This document shows, piece after piece, positions 1,052-37,259 of a DNA stretch of 64,000 nt. Position 1 is the stretch's first letter. Each line of letters begins with the position of its first letter. A program made the translations under genes and the position numbers. The stretch is from positions 2,108,001-2,172,000 of the forward strand of contig JBLDXI010000032.1 in assembly GCA_047495785.1 (NCBI GenBank), given 5' to 3'. Source of the DNA: Lepidodermella squamata. Taxonomy: Eukaryota > Animalia > Gastrotricha. The notes beneath the pieces were generated by a model, which was not told the origin of the DNA, did not search any database, and saw nothing but the letters and a program-made list of their open reading frames with translations.

Positions 1052-3018
1052 AGCATTTTCCCCATGTGGAACTGACCCAACCTGGTAGGTGTGTTATTTT
1101 TCATGCAATTTGGCATGCAAACTGTCTGACACGTAGAGTTGTTAAAAAAACGCTGTCCGAGGATGGACAAAACAATTGACAGATTACTTATTTCATTTCG
1201 CTAAAACAGCATGCGTGATAATGGACAATATCTGCGTTAGATTCACAGCTGTGCGCGCCTTCTAATGTCTAATTTACGAAACTTAGTTGAACTTACGGAA
1301 TATATGTTCATCTTTTTCATTAGCTTGTTTATCATGGAATAAACCCACATGGCTATTTTTTTTAATAATTTTATGTATAGGTATAATTATACGCGCTCGA
1401 GGGCGTAGAAGAAGCGTACTTCAGGATTGATTACTTTTACAGCAAGAGAGGTTGTATTTTTTTTAGAACCTAAATTCGAACACGGTTGCACGCGAAATTC
1501 GTGAGCTATTATGCTAGGCTGTATTTGACTACAGTAATTGAGCGTGAAATTTGCCAACCTCTAGTTGATAATATCAGCTCTGGTCACCTGTTGACGCCAT
1601 TGCCTCCAACTAAAAAGATGTTGTGCTTCAGGCCGTCTTTCCATGCAATCTGCAAATTAGACCATTAGACAGCATCATCCATCAAAATCGCCAGCTTTTG
1701 CTGACCTCATAAATGCCGCCGTTGGCATGGCGCTGAAATTTTAGTGCTTTTTATTTCTGACAAAGACGGGCATCGATGAGTGATATTGAGTGAAGAAGCC
1801 GCATACTTAATCGCACGCAACCGGCGGGTAAAATTGGCATTGGGATGAAAATTGGCAGGGGATATCCTATTAGAGCGCTGCTCTCTTACAGTTATCGAAA
1901 GAAAAATGACGATGAAACGATTGGTTTTTGCAGGGCATTCGACTGATTAAATCGGGGCTTATCTCACACGCCTTTGCGCCAAAAATCTTCGATTTCTATA
2001 TTAGGACTGATTATTCAACCTTGAAAAACTTGGTTTTGTCCAATTTTCCCGCCTCTACAAAACGAGTTTTGTTAAAAATTCCCATTTTTGAAAAATGCTT
2101 TTTTGCATCATATATTATGAATTATGACAAGATCGCCACTGTTCCCCCTTGCTTGGTTATTTTTTGCTTCAATCGAAATTAAGGAATCTTGGATGGCACG
2201 GAATGCAGAATGACCTTTTCCTGCACGAATGACCGCTTGAATCCAAAAGATTGCTTATCTCCTCTGTATCTGCTAAATACTCGGAGAAATGCAGCTGGAA
2301 TATTCAGGAAAAAGTGATCTTGCACGCCATTTATATAGGAAAATACGATAATAAAAAATCCATATTAAAAAACTGAGCCTATAACCCAATCATAATAGTC
2401 AGTTCTGGTTATTTGACATGCACACCGTGAAGTTGCTTACTTGAAAACTGGCGTCGACATAAAGTGGCGTGATTCCAACCGGGACCAATCGGTTCCAAAC
2501 AAAAAAAACGATTTCGGCCCTCAACACCGTTAAGGATTTCTTAATTGCCAGTCGATTCAATTTTTTGGCGAGATGGTGCGAGACGGATAAAAGTAACTAT
2601 TCGAAACGATCATACTATCCGAAATTTGCGGCTTTTCCACTTTTTCAGGAAAGTAGTTTGATAACTGGAGCGAAGTTTGATGATTTGTTCTTGACTCGTG
2701 ATTTTCAGGCAATTATAGATAATGTCATTATACGAATAAGATAGCACCCATATAACACTACTACGATCTCAGTACGGTATTGCTACGATTAGTGCTATCA
2801 GTAGCACTACGGTGAAAAATAGATAGCAGCACGGTGCTACGGTGCGATCTTCAAAATTTCGTAAAAATGGAAATTAACTAGGAAAACGCCGAAAACTTGG
2901 AAAATGCTGGCCTGAAGGTTTGTCCCAACTGCCAGAACAGAATTTACTCGCTTACTTTCAGGGTGACTCAAGTGCTGAATTCAGCCAAATAACGTAATTT
3001 GAGCGCAATTTCAGGCAT

Positions 3019-5773
3019 CCAGGGCGCCCTGACGGAGAATCCAATTGGGACAGGGTTTGGTTCGCCTGGAAGGCCGTTCCCGGGGCTTCAACCTGATGCA
3101 ATCGCATTCCGGCCGCGATACTCCGTTGGGCGCCTAGGGAAGCCCGAAATCAGCCAAAATGACCCAAAACCGCTATTCCATTCGCAACTTCGGGCGCCCA
3201 GGGCGCCCTGACGGAGAATCCAATTGGGACAGGGTTTGGTTCGCCTGGAAGGCCGTTCCCGGGGCTTCAACCTGATGCAATTGCATTCCGGCCGCGATAC
3301 TCCGTTGGGCGCCTAGGGAAGCCCGAAATCAGCCAAAATGACCCAAAACCGCTATTCCATTCGCAACTTCGGGCGCCCAGGGCGCCCTGACGGAGAATCC
3401 AATTGGGACAGGGTTTGGTTCGCCTGGAAGGCCGTTCCCGGGGCTTCAACCTGATGCAATCGCATTCCGGCCGCGATACTCCGTTGGGCGCCTAGGGAAG
3501 CCCGAAATCAGCCAAAATGACCCAAAACCGCTATTCCATTCGCAACTTCGGGCGCCCAGGGCGCCCTGACGGAGAATCCAATTGGGACAGGGTTTGGTTC
3601 GCCTGGAAGGCCGTTCCCGGGGCTTCAACCTGATGCAATCGCATTCCGGCCGCGATACTCCGTTGGGCGCCTAGGGAAGCCCGAAATCAGCCAAAATGAC
3701 CCAAAACCGCTATTCCATTCGCAACTTCGGGCGCCCAGGGCGCCCTGACGGAGAATCCAATTGGGACAGGGTTTGGTTCGCCTGGAAGGCCGTTCCCGGG
3801 GCTTCAACCTGATGCAATCGCATTCCGGCCGCGATACTCCGTTGGGCGCCTAGGGAAGCCCGAAATCAGCCAAAATGACCCGAAACCGCTATTCCATTCG
3901 CAACTTTGGGCGCCCAGGGCGCCCTCACGGAGAATCCAATTGGGACAGGGTTTGGTTCGCCTGGAAGGCCGTTCCCGGGGCTTCAATCTGATGCAATTGC
4001 ATTCCGGCCGCGATACTCCGTTGGGCGCCTAGGGAAGCCCGAAATCAGCCAAAATGACCCAAAACCGCTATTCCATTCGCAACTTCGGGCGCCCAGGGCG
4101 CCCTGACGGAGAATCCAATTGGGACAGGGTTTGGTTCGCCTGGAAGGCCGTTCCCGGGGCTTCAACCTGATGCAATCGCATTCCGGCCGCGATACTCCGT
4201 TGGGCGCCTAGGGAAGCCCGAAATCAGCCAAAATGACCCAAAACCGCTATTCCATTCGCAACTTCGGGCGCCCAGGGCGCCCTGACGGAGAATCCAATTG
4301 GGACAGGGTTTGGTTCGCCTGGAAGGCCGTTCCCGGGGCTTCAACCTGATGCAATCGCATTCCGGCCGCGATACTCCGTTGGGCGCCTAGGGAAGCCCGA
4401 AATCAGCCAAAATGACCCGAAACCGCTATTCCATTCGCAACTTTGGGCGCCCAGGGCGCCCTCACGGAGAATCCAATTGGGACAGGGTTTGGTTCGCCTG
4501 GAAGGCCGTTCCCGGGGCTTCAATCTGATGCAATTGCATTCCGGCCGCGATACTCCGTTGGGCGCCTAGGGAAGCCCGAAATCAGCCAAAATGACCCGAA
4601 ACCGCTATTCCATTCGCAACTTTGGGCGCCCAGGGCGCCCTCACGGAGAATCCAATTGGGACAGGGTTTGGTTCGCCTGGAAGGCCGTTCCCGGGGCTTC
4701 AATCTGATGCAATTGCATTCCGGCCGCGATACTCCGTTGGGCGCCTAGGGAAGCCCGAAATCAGCCAAAATGACCCAAAACCGCTATTCCATTCGCAACT
4801 TCGGGCGCCCAGGGCGCCCTGACGGAGAATCCAATTGGGACAGGGTTTGGTTCGCCTGGAAGGCCGTTCCCGGGGCTTCAACCTGATGCAATCGCATTCC
4901 GGCCGCGATACTCCGTTGGGCGCCTAGGGAAGCCCGAAATCAGCCAAAATGACCCAAAACCGCTATTCCATTCGCAACTTCGGGCGCCCAGGGCGCCCTG
5001 ACGGAGAATCCAATTGGGACAGGGTTTGGTTCGCCTGGAAGGCCGTTCCCGGGGCTTCAACCTGATGCAATCGCATTCCGGCCGCGATACTCCGTTGGGC
5101 GCCTAGGGAAGCCCGAAATCAGCCAAAATGACCCGAAACCGCTATTCCATTCGCAACTTTGGGCGCCCAGGGCGCCCTCACGGAGAATCCAATTGGGACA
5201 GGGTTTGGTTCGCCTGGAAGGCCGTTCCCGGGGCTTCAATCTGATGCAATTGCATTCCGGCCGCGATACTCCGTTGGGCGCCTAGGGAAGCCCGAAATCA
5301 GCCAAAATGACCCAAAACCGCTATTCCATTCGCAACTTCGGGCGCCCAGGGCGCCCTGACGGAGAATCCAATTGGGACAGGGTTTGGTTCGCCTGGAAGG
5401 CCGTTCCCGGGGCTTCAACCTGATGCAATCGCATTCCGGCCGCGATACTCCGTTGGGCGCCTAGGGAAGCCCGAAATCAGCCAAAATGACCCAAAACCGC
5501 TATTCCATTCGCAACTTCGGGCGCCCAGGGCGCCCTGACGGAGAATCCAATTGGGACAGGGTTTGGTTCGCCTGGAAGGCCGTTCCCGGGGCTTCAATCT
5601 GATGCAATTGCATTCCGGCCGCGATACTCCGTTGGGCGCCTAGGGAAGCCCGAAATCAGCCAAAATGACCCAAAACCGCTATTCCATTCGCAACTTTGGG
5701 CGCCCAGGGCGCCCTCACGGAGAATCCAATTGGGACAGGGTTTGGTTCGCCTGGAAGGCCGTTCCCGGGGCTT
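3019..5773. repeat. GC-rich tandem satellite, 179-bp monomer, ~15.4 near-identical copies
   Basis: Exact 179-bp periodicity (ORF track repeats every 179 bp); monomers differ at only about 5 positions. Confidence 0.99.
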
Positions 5774-30871: not shown

Positions 30872-31320
30872 ATATTTTTTTTATTTTTTTTCAAACAAAT
30901 ATTTTATATTTTATTTCAACGAAAAATAAAAAATAAAATAAAATATAAAATAAAATTGTTAAATTAAAAAATAGAAATAAAATTATTTACAAAATATTTT
31001 TATTTTTTTTTTATAAATATTTTCTTTTTTAAATAAAATTATTTATTTATTTATTTTAAACGTACTCCGACAACTGAGACCACGACAACTCAGATCCGAC
31101 AACTGAGACCGGACAACCGAGACCAAAATATAAATAAATAATTTTATTTTCGCTAACCGAGACACCGACAACCGAGACCAAATAATTCGATTTAATAATT
31201 AATTAAATCTCGGACAACCGAGACTCCGACAACCGAGACACCGACAACTGAGACCAAATAATTATAATAAATTAAATTTACAAAGGAATGGCTTACTCAC
31301 ATATACTTTACGTTCTAAGG

Positions 31321-31362
31321 TTAGGGTTAGGGTTAGGGTTAGGGTTAGGGTTAGGGTTAGGG
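31321..31362 (+). repeat. Interstitial (TTAGGG)7 telomere-like tract
   Basis: Seven perfect TTAGGG units followed by degenerate ttgggg/ctgggt. Confidence 0.97.
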
Positions 31363-31464
31363 TTGGGGCTGGGTTGGTGTCTCAATATGCTGAATATGCT
31401 CAATAATCGGCTTCAATTTATGCTTTTATTAAAAATTTAATTTATTATAATTATTTGGTCTCAG

Positions 31465-32151
31465 GGCTCTACGACAATTTAGCAATACAAAGATAAAATC
31501 CGACATTTTTTCTGCGACATTTAATCAAAACAAAATAAAAAACGACATTATATAAAACTTTAAACTAGGGCCGACAATTTGGCAATCTTAATTAGGCAAA
31601 GTCATTTTAAAATAAATATTCATATGATTTTATTTATGTAGCAGCACCGACTTCAACAAAGTCACGTAGGTACAAAATTGGAAATCAGCAGCGACAAAAT
31701 TTAGGTTTTTTTGATAATGAGTGAACCGACAAATCAGCGATAGGGGAACGGTTAGGTATGGTGAAGGTGGGTATGATAGAGGTACATGGTGCTGCCGTGG
31801 GTGCTACCGTAGATCGGTCAGTTTTAGCATTGGCCACTCCGGGTCAAAGGCGACAAATGACTGCCTAAACCCTAAACAGCGTAGTTACATTCGTTCGATC
31901 TTCTAATTTCATCACTTCTGCTCAATTTTTGCACGTAAAGTTAGAATTGTTTTTTTGCGGAAATGGTGGTGAAATTAGTTACTTTTGAAAAAGTCACACA
32001 GAGATTTTGTCGTCGCTGGATTGTCGTTCTCATTATTTCGCTCAAAATATAATGTAATGTAATCAAGGCGATTTTTTAAATTTTGTCGGAATTATTCGTG
32101 CTTAGCCAAATTGTCGTTTCATAAATTATTTTGCTAGATTGTCGTAACGCG
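31465..32151. mobile_element. Nested MULE-type MITE
   Basis: Termini GGCTCTACGAC...GTCGTAACGCG, cgacaa subterminal repeats, 8-bp TSD ggtctcag. Confidence 0.9.
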
Positions 32152-32642
32152 GGTCTCAGTTGTCGGTGTCTCGGTTGTCGGAGTCTCGGTTGTCCGAGAT
32201 TTAATTAATTATTAAATCGAATTATTTGGTCTCGGTTGTCGGGTGTGGCGACAAATCCGTGCGCGACTTTTGCGTCCGTATACTTTGCGCCCCGACAATT
32301 ACGTCCAACGACATTCTAGCCCCACAAACTGAGCGACTTATCCGCCCGCGACATGTTGGTCCTAATTGTGTTAATTTAGGCGACAATTTAGCTAGCGTCA
32401 CTTCCGACGGCGACAAAAGCGCTATGTATAAATTATGAACTATATTTATTTACGACATTATAGCTGGCGACTTTATAGCTGGCGACATAATAGCCAAGTG
32501 ATTCCAAAGAGTAAAGCGAAGTTACAGCGAAAGCATAGCATATAGCATAAGATTCTATTGAATTAGTTAGCATTAGGATAATATATTATAGGGGCTAATG
32601 AATGACGGTTAGTTTAACTTGAAATTTTTGCGCATGTCAATT

Positions 32643-35465
32643 TTATTGCGGCGGGTTTGGCCCATCGTCGGCGTCATCGACGTTGTCCGTACGAATGGAG
32701 CGACAAATGTCGACCAAATAATCAACCAGTTGTTGGTCGCTGTAGGCGTGGCCCTCCTGTTCGTACCGAGTGACGAGACGCATGAGAGCGGCATCGATTT
32801 GCGTGTAAGCGGCATTGCGAGATCGCTGGACCGGAGCTCCAGATCGGAATAAGGCCATCGTATGAGCCGCCCAGCTGGCCTCGTTCCGTAGCCTTTCGAC
32901 GAATAAGAAAAACTGGGGGTGGACGCCGAGTGTGGCTTGGATTGCGTAATGCCAGCCCTCCAGGCTAGCATCTGAGCGCGGCAAACGTTGTCTAAAAGAC
33001 AGAGATAGAAGCAAGGGACAGATTGGAGCAAATTAACCATACCTAACTCGGTCGAATTGATTCCATTCTCCAATTCGGTATCGAGGGTTGTGGTATCCAT
33101 GGCGATGATATCCAATAAAATTACGCCTAAAATAGTCATACAGGTCGGCAAGTCTGGGGAACTCGCCAATTAAGGTAGCGATGCGATCATCGAGGACATC
33201 GAAGGCTTCCGCAACTCGATTGGTTGGAAGAAATGCTAGGGCCATCAATAGGCGGACAGCTTGACGCAGCTCGGGCGAGCGGTTGTAAGCACGGCAAAGG
33301 CGGTATTTGCGAACCTACGTTTGGTATATTACAATAATAATATTAGTTACTTCATTATTTTCATCTGAAATACCTTTCTAATGAGGCACTGGCACAAGTG
33401 AAAAAAGCATCCTTTCACATCGACGTTACCAAAGGTAGCTGAAACTGACTCGCGGCTCGCTTTTTCGAAATCCATTATAATGGAATAGCTGTTGTAGGAT
33501 AAGACAATATTTATAGCGAATAATAAGAAAAAAATTAGCAGAATACCTCTCGTCCTCAGGCGACAGGACATTGGCTGCAGCGAGCAAAGCCAAAACGGCG
33601 GCAAAGAACCGGTCATATGTTGCCCTGCTCTTGTTTACCAGCAAGCCGAAAATTGCAGGCACGCAAAGGCCCAACCTCAAGATTATATGGATGGTGAAGA
33701 GTTGCAAAAATAGGCTAGGCACCACCTTGAAAGTGCCATCTGCAGCGAGATGGCGATGCGAGTGAAGCCAAGAGATGCTGCGCCTTGTACCAAAGATGAA
33801 AAACCTCTCCGGATCATCCCGCCCAGAGTCGTGGAGGACGAAAGGCTCGTCAGCGTGAGTAACAGATAGCTCAGGAGGCACAGTGATGTTACCTATTGAA
33901 TTGGGTGCGTTGCACGCGGAGACTCGGCTTTGTCGCCTTGCTCTTTGCGCCATCCTTAGTTGGGCTGCTCGACTTGACATTCGCAGCAAAGCTTCTTCTG
34001 GCATTCCAAGTGTTTCACTTTGAAGTACACATCTCGTTCGCTCGCTGGTAACACTTGCGCGGCGCTAACAATGAAAATGATTAAGGTTAAAATTTTAAGA
34101 AACATTGCGCATGGAGTTGCACTCACTCGAATTTGATTAGATGCTTGATGAGCTAGTAGGTCTTCTGCGGTTGGTATCGGGTGATTGTGTTTCTGATCGT
34201 CTTGATCTGGCATCGGTCGCTGCGATTCATCACACCGAATTCGAGCTTGACATTCGCCAGTAGATTTGCCTTCGTTGCATCGCCACGATGACGTGCCGTT
34301 AGACAAATCGCGATGGTAACGGTATCGGCATCGGCCAAACACGACAAGAGGTCGGCCACGGTTAGATGTCAAGCGTTCCGGAACTTCCCAAACGCGCGTC
34401 GTAGTAGGTGGAAGCAATTCATCAGTCTGGGGGGCGTTGGGTCGCGAAGGCCTGTGGACTGATCGGACAAGAGGAATGGCTGAGCTTGAAGATCGCGGCC
34501 TAGCTTGACGAGTGTGCTGCGTTCGATTCTCATCTTCCTCTGACGATGATGAGTACCTGCGCTCACGTGATGGCAACTGAAACTGCCGGGGAGCAGAAAC
34601 TTCGCTAGAATCGTCCTGAAGCTGAAATCGAAGCAGATCATTGACAGCGTCATCTAAAAACACGAAACTCGAAGTAAGAAATATGTGAGATTCCAAGTAT
34701 AAAATTACCGTTAGCAAACACGTCTTCGTCAGATAGGCCGCCCATCGCTTGATTAAGAAGATGATCTTCATTGCGACGAGTTGTAGTGGTAACTTGGGCA
34801 GCAGCACCACTGGCTTCATTTTCCCGGTTGGGAAGGGTGACTTGGGTAACCCGCGGTAAGGGCATCGGCTCCAATTCAGGCAGATCGTCATCGGAGTCGG
34901 TGGATAGGCGCAGTGTCCGAGCACGTCGGCGTATCGGCGAATGGTCAGCTACTTGAGTAGGGCCAGTTGATTCGAATCGTCTCCGTCTGGGCTGTGTAAG
35001 AATGTCTTCGCGAGGAACGCGGGGCGGTCGACCCCTGCCACGACTTCCTCTCGGACGACCGCGACCACGACCAGTTCCGCGGGCTGGTAACGGAAGGGAA
35101 TTAGGCATGGGTGGAGGCGGAGGCGAAGGCGGGCGAGCTCCGTCATCGTCCTTGAAGTCGGAGCCTGAATCTGACTCGTCATTCATTAAATGCAGCTTTA
35201 CTATCTCTCTTGAAAACAGAAAGAACACACTGTGTTGATACTAATTGAAAACCGAGAACTAATACTTACCGCGTCATGATGATCCGACGGCAAAGCGGAC
35301 ACTTCTTCGAAGCCGGAACTTCGTTGAATTCCAGTTCAAGATCAGACCCGTTGTACGACCGGAGCCATTGCTTGAGACACCGTTTACAGAAAAGGTGCCC
35401 ACACTGTAGGACTCGTGGATGTCGGGCGGTCTCGCGGCATATCAGGCACTCGAGGAAGTTACGGT
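32643..35465 (-). CDS. RING-HC + AT-hook + FLYWCH + MULE DDE transposase (7 exons, 5' end missing)
   Basis: In-phase exons give CLIC..CGHLFCKRC..CPLC (RING), GRGRPR hooks, YRY..WRC..C.A...HNH (FLYWCH), DGTF, MDFE, CFFHLCQ, LEGWH. No ATG upstream of RING before an in-frame stop in the TIR. Confidence 0.85.
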
Positions 35466-35953
35466 AATTTATTATAATTATTTGGTCTCAGTTGTCGGTG
35501 TCTCGGTTGTCGGAGTCTCGGTTGTCCGAGATTTAATTAATTATTAAATCGAATTATTTGGTCTCGGTTGTCGGTGTCTCGGTTAGCGAAAATAAAATTA
35601 TTTATTTATATTTTGGTCTCGGTTGTCCGGTCTCAGTTGTCGTTTTCTCGGTTGTCGGGTCTCAGTTGTCGTAGAACCATTTTAAAATTTATTATCAATA
35701 TTATTTCAGAAAAAAGTTTATTTTCTCATCTATTTATTTCACAATCCATTAGCTTGTATCCATTTTATTATTTCGTTGCGTTGGTGCATTATCCTTGTCT
35801 TATCGTTCTTTGCGTGGTGGGAAGATAAACTAAGCACATGATCAGATTCATTTCATACCTATACCCATATAAGGCAATGTAGCTTTTTCTGTAATTTGTT
35901 TCTTTTGTTAGTTATTTTAACTTTCATATATTTTTTCAGTCATAGTTAAAATT

Positions 35954-36528
35954 ATGTTCAAGTTTTTTGATGTCACGGTTTTGAACCCTTTGACATGGGG
36001 AAGGAGAATAATCAACAATGTAGATGCTGCCATGCATGACCAAAATGAAGGAATTTGGCTTGGCAAAAAACCGCTTAAAGATTGTGGCATTGGTGTCACC
36101 ATAGCACCGGGCTTTGATTTATTTCATTGGGCAATACTCATCGATGGACAGCTTTACGAAGTCAGAGTTGACAAAGCAAACGGTAGGTATCTATTAATGT
36201 CCATGGCGACAACTACCCCACTATTCGGTATATCTGAATTATTTCGAATTTTCCAGGCGAATACGATACAACTTGTGACCAAACCTACATTGGTAAATTC
36301 AAATGGGTACGGCTGACCCGAACTTGTATACGAACAAAAGCTGAGCTTATCGACAAATGTGAAAGGTCGACGAAGAAATACGCTCTTGTGCCGTATGAAC
36401 TTGGAATGTTGAATGACAAAATGAACTGTCAACAATTTGTTCACATGCTCTATGGCTATGCTGCTGGTATAACAGTATTTAAAGCTACTTGTGAAACCAA
36501 CATTATTTCTGGCAATGCTTTGTTCTAA
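35954..36528 (+). CDS. Permuted papain-fold (PPPDE/LRAT-like NlpC/P60) protein, 166 aa, 2 exons
   Basis: Exons 35954-36182 and 36257-36528 in phase; HWAILIDGQLYE (catalytic His) precedes NCQQFV (catalytic Cys). Confidence 0.75.
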
Positions 36529-36899
36529 TACCTGATGTAATATATATACGATGGTTGTTAAGCGAATAATAACGATACCTTAATGATAGCTACCTGATGA
36601 CTAGCTTGATGGATGGATACTATCTCGGACAGTTAGATTAAGACTCTTTGCTTCGCCCTATATAAACCATCGTCTCTAATATAATACGTTGCTGCTAACA
36701 ACGCTCTGCTGAAAATAGTTCCCACTTTTAATAGCCGCCAGTTACTGAATTTTTTGGATTCAGTTAATCAGTGGATTAACTGCAAGGTTTAATCGTTTGA
36801 ATAGTGCGATGAGAGATGTGTAAAAATAAAGTAAAACGATGAGAGATGCGTAAAATAATGCTCGCTATTTCCATGAGGTATTAATCCCGCTAATATGTC

Positions 36900-37259
36900 G
36901 CAGGCCATAACGCGCACGCATTTATTTGGCTGTTTAGTCGCGTTTATTTTGTCGCTCGCCATTTCGTCGCCGCTATTATGACGGCGTCCCTTCAGTTTTT
37001 ATCGTTTTGTCGTTTTTATCAGTTGTGTATGAACTTTCGTAATAGATAAGAAATGTTTGTAGGAATTTGGAAAAATGATAAGAAATGTTTTTATTCTTTC
37101 TCTTATTTTATTCATACTCTTGTTAGTAAAGTGAGGAACAAAAGTCTACTTGAGATAGCAACTAGCTGGGACGCCGTCATAATAGCGGCGACGAAATGGC
37201 GAGCGACAAAATAAACGCGACTAAACAGCCAAATAAATGCGTGCGCGTTATGGCCTGCG
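36900..37259. repeat. Perfect ~91-bp inverted repeat with ~177-bp AT-rich spacer
   Basis: 36900-36990 is the reverse complement of ~37168-37259; MULE-like cgac motifs, GGG terminus faces the spacer. Confidence 0.9.

Follow-up and report, generated by a model that had tools for sequence, protein, structure and literature searches.

A 5'-truncated Phantom-type Mutator-like element in the gastrotrich Lepidodermella squamata and the predicted RING-finger transposase of its family

Gene structure and RING finger of the window copy

We analysed a 64,000-nt stretch of the genome of the gastrotrich Lepidodermella squamata (assembly GCA_047495785.1, contig JBLDXI010000032.1, positions 2,108,001 to 2,172,000; hereafter the window, with position 1 as its first letter). 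At 35466-32643, its minus strand carries a gene for a Mutator-like element (MULE) transposase that begins with an exon encoding a RING finger of the C3HC4 (RING-HC) type. We consider it likely that this locus is a young, 5'-truncated and one-ended copy of a Phantom-type MULE, whose family transposase carries an integral N-terminal RING-HC domain maintained by selection. Read directly, the region comprises seven exons with 825 codons and no internal stop, separated by six introns of 51-62 nt each, all of which (6/6) have GT-AG borders and phases that are consistent down to the stop codon. Searches and folding were run per exon, and joined exons were used solely for local frame checks (in the copies on contigs C29 and C9); the splicing of the seven exons into one fusion reading frame is predicted. 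The parts of the gene are as follows, with identities given to the related copies on contigs C29 and C3.

35466-35270, minus strand: exon A, 66 codons, 5'-truncated RING-HC domain (Pfam zf-C3HC4, E = 1.6e-10)
35269-35209, minus strand: intron 1, 61 nt, GTAAGT...CAAG, splitting an Arg codon between positions 2 and 3
35208-34709, minus strand: exon B, REIVKLHL, acidic run, Pro-rich stretch and two RGRP AT-hook cores
34653-34127, minus strand: exon C, FLYWCH zinc finger (PF04500, E = 1.2e-8), 47% identity to C29
34064-33547, minus strand: exon D, N-terminal half of the MULE catalytic domain with the first Asp in DGTF, 68% identity to C29/C3
33488-33374, minus strand: exon E, second half of the MULE core with the second Asp (DFE) and the CxxH motif as CFFH
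33314-33043, minus strand: exon F, conserved transposase region, 73-74% identity to C29/C3
32991-32643, minus strand: exon G, LEGWH with the presumed catalytic Glu, stop codon TAA at 32645-32643

The RING exon reads YRNFLECLICRETARHPRVLQCGHLFCKRCLKQWLRSY...KKCPLCRRIIMTR and contains all eight C3HC4 ligands in canonical spacing (C-x2-C-x11-C-x-H-x2-C-x2-C-x25-C-x2-C). Pfam zf-C3HC4 matches it with 41 bits against a cut-off of 21, a dozen further RING models match as well, and a comparison with PDB sequences retrieved the RINGs of TRIM2, TRIM39, AMFR and BRCA1. The AF2 model of the exon has a modest pLDDT of 67.7, and its top 50 Foldseek matches in the PDB are all RING domains of ubiquitin ligases (E3), at E values of 7e-3 or higher and TM scores of 0.5-0.6. 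In a three-sequence alignment of the RINGs of the window, C29 and the remnant on contig C43, 27 columns are invariant, including the ligands C7, C10, C22, H24, C27, C30, C56 and C59 as well as Ile9, Trp34, Pro57 and Arg60. RING fingers contact the ubiquitin-loaded conjugating enzyme (E2~Ub) through an Ile after Cys1, a Trp in the central helix, a Pro after Cys7 and a basic linchpin after Cys8, and we take Ile9, Trp34, Pro57 and Arg60 to be the E2~Ub-contacting positions known from studied RINGs (c-Cbl, RNF4 and TRIM structures). The predicted RING fold and these four residues suggest that the domain has E3 activity. Between the window and C29, the proportion of nonsynonymous differences (pN) in the RING exon is 0.26, and the synonymous proportion (pS) is 0.85 (saturated); pN of the catalytic exons lies in the same range (0.18-0.26). 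Judged from this comparison, the RING exon is under purifying selection, with all ligands conserved.

The donor of the first intron (CG/GTAAGT at 35270/35269) and its acceptor (TTCAAG/A at 35209/35208) split a codon, CG+A, which restores an Arg followed by EIVKLHL. Exon B has no match in the exon-wise Pfam scan, and its RGRPRGS motif is kept in C29 and C9. The MULE domain PF10551 is split across exons D and E, and because of this division each half remains below the gathering score (21.7 and 21.5 bits against a cut-off of 27.6, ~3e-4 each), whereas the C29 paralogue, with its MULE exon unsplit, reaches 46.1 bits (6.8e-12). The motifs DGTF, DFE, CFFH and LEGWH are all present, and the FLYWCH finger lies N-terminal to the MULE domain, as is characteristic of the Phantom subclass. 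Thus, an earlier sequence-only reading of this DNA, which had described a RING-HC exon with eight ligands joined in phase by a 61-nt GT-AG intron to EIVKLHL, an acidic and Pro-rich linker with AT hooks, a FLYWCH finger and an unbroken MULE core, was accurate on each of these parts: the domains were recovered by Pfam or by their motifs, the frame is open, and the first junction recurs in C29/C3.

The fusion in other copies of the genome

The sequence-only reading had suggested looking genome-wide for further copies with both domains, and such copies exist. The RING exon and the core exon D served as queries in a six-frame search of the species' genome (121 Mb, 151 contigs), which identified RING and MULE parts in collinear arrangement on the same strand at three further loci, on contigs C29, C3 and C9, in the regions C29:3548200-3552800, C3:371100-374400 and C9:4584000-4590600. 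At C29 the whole gene is present in collinear order, with 62-74% amino-acid identity to the window in the RING and core exons, and the C3 copy is 99.4% identical to C29 but lacks 1226 nt comprising exons B and C. The two have different flanks, different 9-bp target duplications (CGCTCATTC and GCTTGGGGG) and inverted ends of ~230 nt that are 69% alike, so that C29 and C3 are products of recent Mutator-type transposition. By the measure of their 99.4% identity, this shows that the family was active in the recent past.

Anchor-guided comparison was used to check the exon junctions of C29. Its RING exon ends with ATC AG/gt and the next exon starts with G GAA ATC ATC AAG (R-EIIKLRL); the junction between the RING and REI(V/I)KL is identical in place and phase in C29/C3 and the window (R-EIVKLHL), and the intron at this junction measures 54 nt in C29. 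Several donors of C29 (L049) are of the GTT type (GTTAAA, GTTAGC, GTTCGT). C29 also lacks the D/E intron of the window gene, and its C/D intron measures 322 nt vs. 62 nt in the window, differences that would reflect intron gain or loss inside one transposon family.

The C9 element represents a third, more distant lineage, with ~34% core identity to the window, 36-44% identity in the RING and composite inverted ends of ~450 nt. Its intron layout differs, as a 390-nt intron splits the RING, and the second RING half, the acidic run, the AT hooks, the FLYWCH finger and the MULE core share one exon, save for a 25-nt insert. The fused reading frame is thus evident in C9 independently of any splice prediction. 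The insert (L050:6040-6064) is a 25-nt palindrome between short direct repeats (CATGA) that shifts the frame between the RING and transposase parts and looks like a small insertion or excision footprint. RING-only remnants were found on contigs C43 and C23. Downstream of the solitary leader and RING exon on C43 (L051) lies a reverse-transcriptase-like ORF, non-LTR type by look, at 2286-3068, which probably explains the missing remainder of that copy.

The complete relatives start with a Met, a basic-hydrophobic leader and a short linker ahead of the RING. The leaders read as follows.

C29/C3: MHIKIFFFIAYLFASTGNC
C43: MKFSIVILMCLVGLESIQA
C9: MRPLVVALLCLLFLNVATA

Their Kyte-Doolittle means over 12 residues are 2.2-3.1, and the leader is kept in kind, not in sequence, across the three lineages. 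All three (L049:6527-6583, L051:6405-6461 and L050:6666-6722, minus strand) look cleavable, with small residues at -3/-1. Taken together, these copies support the reading that the RING-HC, the AT-hook linker, the FLYWCH finger and the MULE core have been conserved together in a transposon family as a single coding unit, as predicted from their reading frames.

The truncated 5' side and the nested foldback elements

The window copy differs from these relatives on its 5' side and in its ends. An initiator Met is missing from its RING frame, which follows a TGA at 35490-35488, is open from 35487, and contains a single in-frame ATG within the RING exon (35277-35275), past the last RING cysteine. 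Homology between the window and the paralogues begins at R(N/P)FLECLIC (RNFLECLIC in the window), and where the paralogues carry the Met and the leader, the window has sequence of a miniature inverted-repeat transposable element (MITE), from 35465 upwards. The features that border the gene are as follows.

35465-35706, minus strand: foldback-MITE arm of an unrelated family, in place of the 5' part of the gene, its inner end directly adjoining the RING exon
32243-32500, plus strand: sole surviving terminal inverted repeat of the element, ~255 nt, terminus GGTGTGGCGACAA, with CGACA-type sub-repeats
31066-32242, unstranded: foldback MITE beside the 3' end of the gene, left arm to 31279 and beginning slightly before 31066
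31280-31432: loop of this foldback MITE with (TTAGGG)n
31433-31464 and 32152-32242: right-arm pieces of this foldback MITE, split by a nested MITE
31465-32151: nested 687-nt MITE of another MULE family, ends GGCTCTACGACAATTTAGCAA / inverted, 8-nt duplication GGTCTCAG

The MITE arm has ~50 genomic matches, all ending at base 35465, its inner end, and 178 nt of it recur without mismatch as an inverted copy at 31097-31274. We considered whether the arm might be the element's own inverted repeat and rejected this, as the arm belongs to a family with a loop and a partner arm of its own and, further, the true terminus family (32243-32500) is a different one. The latter repeat occurs in at least 12 other copies, the match starts at 32242 in three of the loci compared, and the partner ends are 62-67% alike. 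Neither a partner of this end nor a second copy of it was found in the whole 64-kb window. Two long terminal inverted repeats are present in C29/C3 and in C9, and one remains in the window copy. A target-site duplication, 8-10 bp in MULEs, can be read only from a copy with two ends; the one-ended gene fragment of 3.2 kb instead has on either side, in direct orientation, the innermost 110 nt of the MITE arm (35465-35574 vs. 31438-31464 plus 32152-32242). As it reads, the window copy has no start of its own for the RING-transposase; with the Met, the leader and one end lost, it can neither move alone nor translate the RING from its own start. Its present form may be the product of an aberrant one-ended insertion or repair event, and the exons that remain open suggest that the truncation was recent.

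These open exons also bear on a reading in which the host has exapted the window copy as a gene, with the MITE arm providing a promoter and a new first exon from which a RING-FLYWCH-MULE protein is still made. On one possible route, translation would start at the ATG at 35680-35678, which is immediately followed by a GT, and this exon would be spliced to a phase-0 AG at 35450-35449 before the first Cys codon. The gene is single-copy, its seven exons are open over 2.5 kb, both the donor following the ATG and the phase-0 acceptor exist, and GTT-type donors are used in the C29 paralogue. The donor (ATG/GTTCTA) is weak, however, the resulting intron would measure 229 nt vs. the 51-62 nt of the gene's own introns, and two ATGs upstream, at 35440 and near 35373, are out of frame. 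In addition, the route is predicted from sequence, no orthologue is known, and the gene retains a transposon terminus common to MITE copies. We therefore consider exaptation improbable.

The foldback-MITE family to which the pieces at 31066-31464 and 35465-35706 belong (L002-L017) has ~240-nt arms built of CGACAAC(C/T)GAGAC sub-repeats and a loop of ~150 nt that always contains a (TTAGGG)n/(CCCTAA)n run, in both orientations relative to the arms. Roughly 25 arm pairs with 90-99% identity are present in the genome. An end of the 32243-type repeat family is also found inside a foldback MITE of the arm family at a second locus (L065, C6:421500-428500, positions 1899-4299), and this second nesting suggests an insertion preference or a shared composite. 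Elsewhere in the window, a perfect 92-nt inverted repeat with a spacing of 177 nt (36899-36990 and 37168-37259) shows a weak match (62% over 87 nt) to the inner portion of the repeat at 32243-32500 and is probably another foldback MITE. Upstream of the MITE arm, at 35954-36316, the opposite (plus) strand carries a 120-codon ORF with protein-like composition and no Pfam match.

Interpretation and comparison with known systems

The joining of RING and transposase in one protein can also be questioned. The family might make two products, a small leader-RING protein ending in the retained first intron and a transposase starting from a separate downstream Met. Retention of the intron would lead to a stop at once (TAA right after MTR in both the window and C43), an in-frame Met lies nine codons into exon B of the window, and the large C9 ORF begins with an ATG. 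Yet in C29/C3 exon 2 lacks a Met close to its beginning, conservation begins exactly at the acceptor and in the frame set by the RING exon, and in C9 the second RING half continues into the acidic stretch within the same exon, the ATG of the large ORF sitting at the 25-nt insertion; we thus regard separate products as quite improbable. Finally, it is very improbable that the RING exon is a passenger, a host fragment captured in the manner of Pack-MULEs and of no function for the element, since, although MULEs are known to capture host fragments (PMC6446971) and the RING adjoins an inverted repeat, no host parent was found in the genome (the best non-element RING has 40-46% identity over ~35 residues), the RING is kept in three lineages with cores just 34-68% identical, and it shows purifying selection as well as a reading frame continuous with that of the transposase.

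Several observations weigh against the interpretation of the locus as a young, truncated copy from a family of RING-bearing transposases. The assembly contains no fully intact copy: exon F of C29 is interrupted by a TAA at a codon that reads TAC in C3, C3 carries the 1226-nt deletion, C9 has the frameshifting 25-nt insert, and the window copy has no head. All seven exons of the window gene are still open, which could mean selection on a gene used by the host and not youth, a less likely alternative to a recent truncation event. The splicing of the fusion transcript and its expression are predictions from the sequence. Relatives of the RING exon outside this genome were not found in a word search, which returned no candidate; a scan of JGI metagenomes based on the RING alignment likewise yielded no relatives, just matches to the pattern, and the Atlas look-alikes of the C29 leader and RING exon, all below 0.9, were generic viral or bacterial RINGs. 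A cleavable-looking signal peptide before a RING and a nuclear enzyme also makes no obvious sense, as the usual topology of a signal peptide would place the RING on the wrong side of the endoplasmic reticulum membrane.

In our proposed mechanism, an intact member of the family would consist, in this order, of the Met and leader, the RING, the acidic run, the AT hooks, the FLYWCH finger and the DDE/MULE core. The AT hooks and the FLYWCH finger may bind the CGACA-type sub-terminal repeats common to all these ends, while the DDE core would excise and integrate the element, leaving 9-bp target duplications. By analogy with RAG1 and Chapaev, the RING could recruit an E2 and ubiquitinate the transposase itself (as a dosage control), chromatin at the ends or host factors; comparable targets have been discussed for the RAG1 RING (PMC8374863, PMC2691831). 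In the window, an aberrant insertion or repair event would have fused a foldback-MITE arm, by its inner end, to the gene at a point just before the first RING cysteine, and this join leaves the RING without a start codon of its own and the element without its 5' inverted repeat. The candidate ubiquitin-ligase transposase of the sequence-only reading thus survives as a RING-MULE coding unit conserved in the family, but not for the window copy itself, which lacks the Met, the leader and the 5' inverted repeat. This copy is a relic and not a working ubiquitin-ligase transposase, and in practice it should be annotated as a truncated relic within nested MITEs and not as a working gene. More tentatively, the intact members may be self-contained ubiquitin-ligase transposases, convergent with the RAG1/Chapaev RING, in which the RING acts on the transposase, on chromatin at the ends or on host silencing factors and the leader adds membrane tethering or a restricted localisation, a possibility that we consider doubtful. 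In any case, the family may provide a simpler system for asking what the RING of a transposase does.

Among public sequences, exon D has 3430 relatives at E<=1e-3 in 1.84 billion proteins, the best with 56% identity. Of the 150 nearest cluster representatives, 123 carry PF10551 and 66 carry FLYWCH, and a RING was found in none of the 150, many of which were called at ORF level, so that a RING on a separate exon would have been overlooked. A word search with the 679-aa ORF of C9 gave one match, a MULE without a RING in the rotifer Didymodactylos carnosus, and the contig of a near relative (P0152) begins within the core exon. A literature search found no paper joining the terms Mutator-like, transposase, RING finger and E3 ligase. 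According to the sequence-only reading, this architecture is not known to have been characterised. It is absent from the 150 nearest relatives, but the statement has to be qualified, as RINGs are known in Chapaev and RAG1 (PMC4411706), and one is tabulated for the Mutator-superfamily element MuDR-37_PI (PMC6446971).

The closest known systems are the Phantom-type MULEs, animal elements with a FLYWCH and MULE transposase that include Tm1 of root-knot nematodes, which has foldback-like ends (PMC3169594, PMC6446971). The family described here shares with them the FLYWCH finger before a MULE DDE core with DGTF, DFE, CxxH and EGWH motifs, long composite inverted ends with short sub-repeats, 9-bp duplications (in C29/C3) and MITE derivatives. 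It differs by ~400 extra N-terminal residues containing the signal-like leader, the RING-HC, the acidic run and the AT hooks, whereas a typical public relative has ~80 residues before the core. Assignment to the Pack-MULE class was rejected because the transposase is present and there is no close host parent gene, given the best RING identity of 40-46% over ~35 residues.

Within the Mutator superfamily, a C3HC4 RING finger is tabulated for MuDR-37_PI of Phytophthora infestans (Table 1 of PMC6446971). This element is likewise annotated with a C3HC4 RING but, compared by description only, belongs to an oomycete MuDR clade with a SWIM-type context, and its RING is tabulated, not characterised. 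Other MULEs encode accessory domains acting on ubiquitin-like modifiers, namely Ulp1 in KI-MULEs and an OTU domain in Hydra MuDR-6_HM (PMC6446971). As in the family of the window copy, such a domain is fused to, or carried with, the MULE transposase; theirs are deconjugating proteases, whereas the window family has, as judged by sequence, a conjugating (E3) module.

The RING of RAG1 is, to our knowledge, the one well-studied ubiquitin ligase built into a transposase-derived enzyme. RING fingers have been described in Chapaev transposases and RAG1 and stated to be absent from other transposable elements (PMC4411706), and the RAG1 RING is a proven E3 that autoubiquitinates (PMC4411706, PMC8374863). 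Like the transposase described here, these proteins are cut-and-paste enzymes of the DDE type whose C3HC4 RING lies on the N-terminal side of the catalytic core. Unlike it, they have a Transib core and a Chapa domain, whereas our family has a MULE core and, according to Pfam, no Chapa domain. The RAG1 and Chapaev RINGs are also not specifically related in sequence to that of the window, so the resemblance is functional only and is probably an analogy through independent acquisition. The family would thus represent a second, independent fusion of a RING to a transposase, in another superfamily and kept under selection through three diverged lineages, which suggests that transposons have adopted ubiquitination repeatedly as a way to control or assist cut-and-paste transposition.

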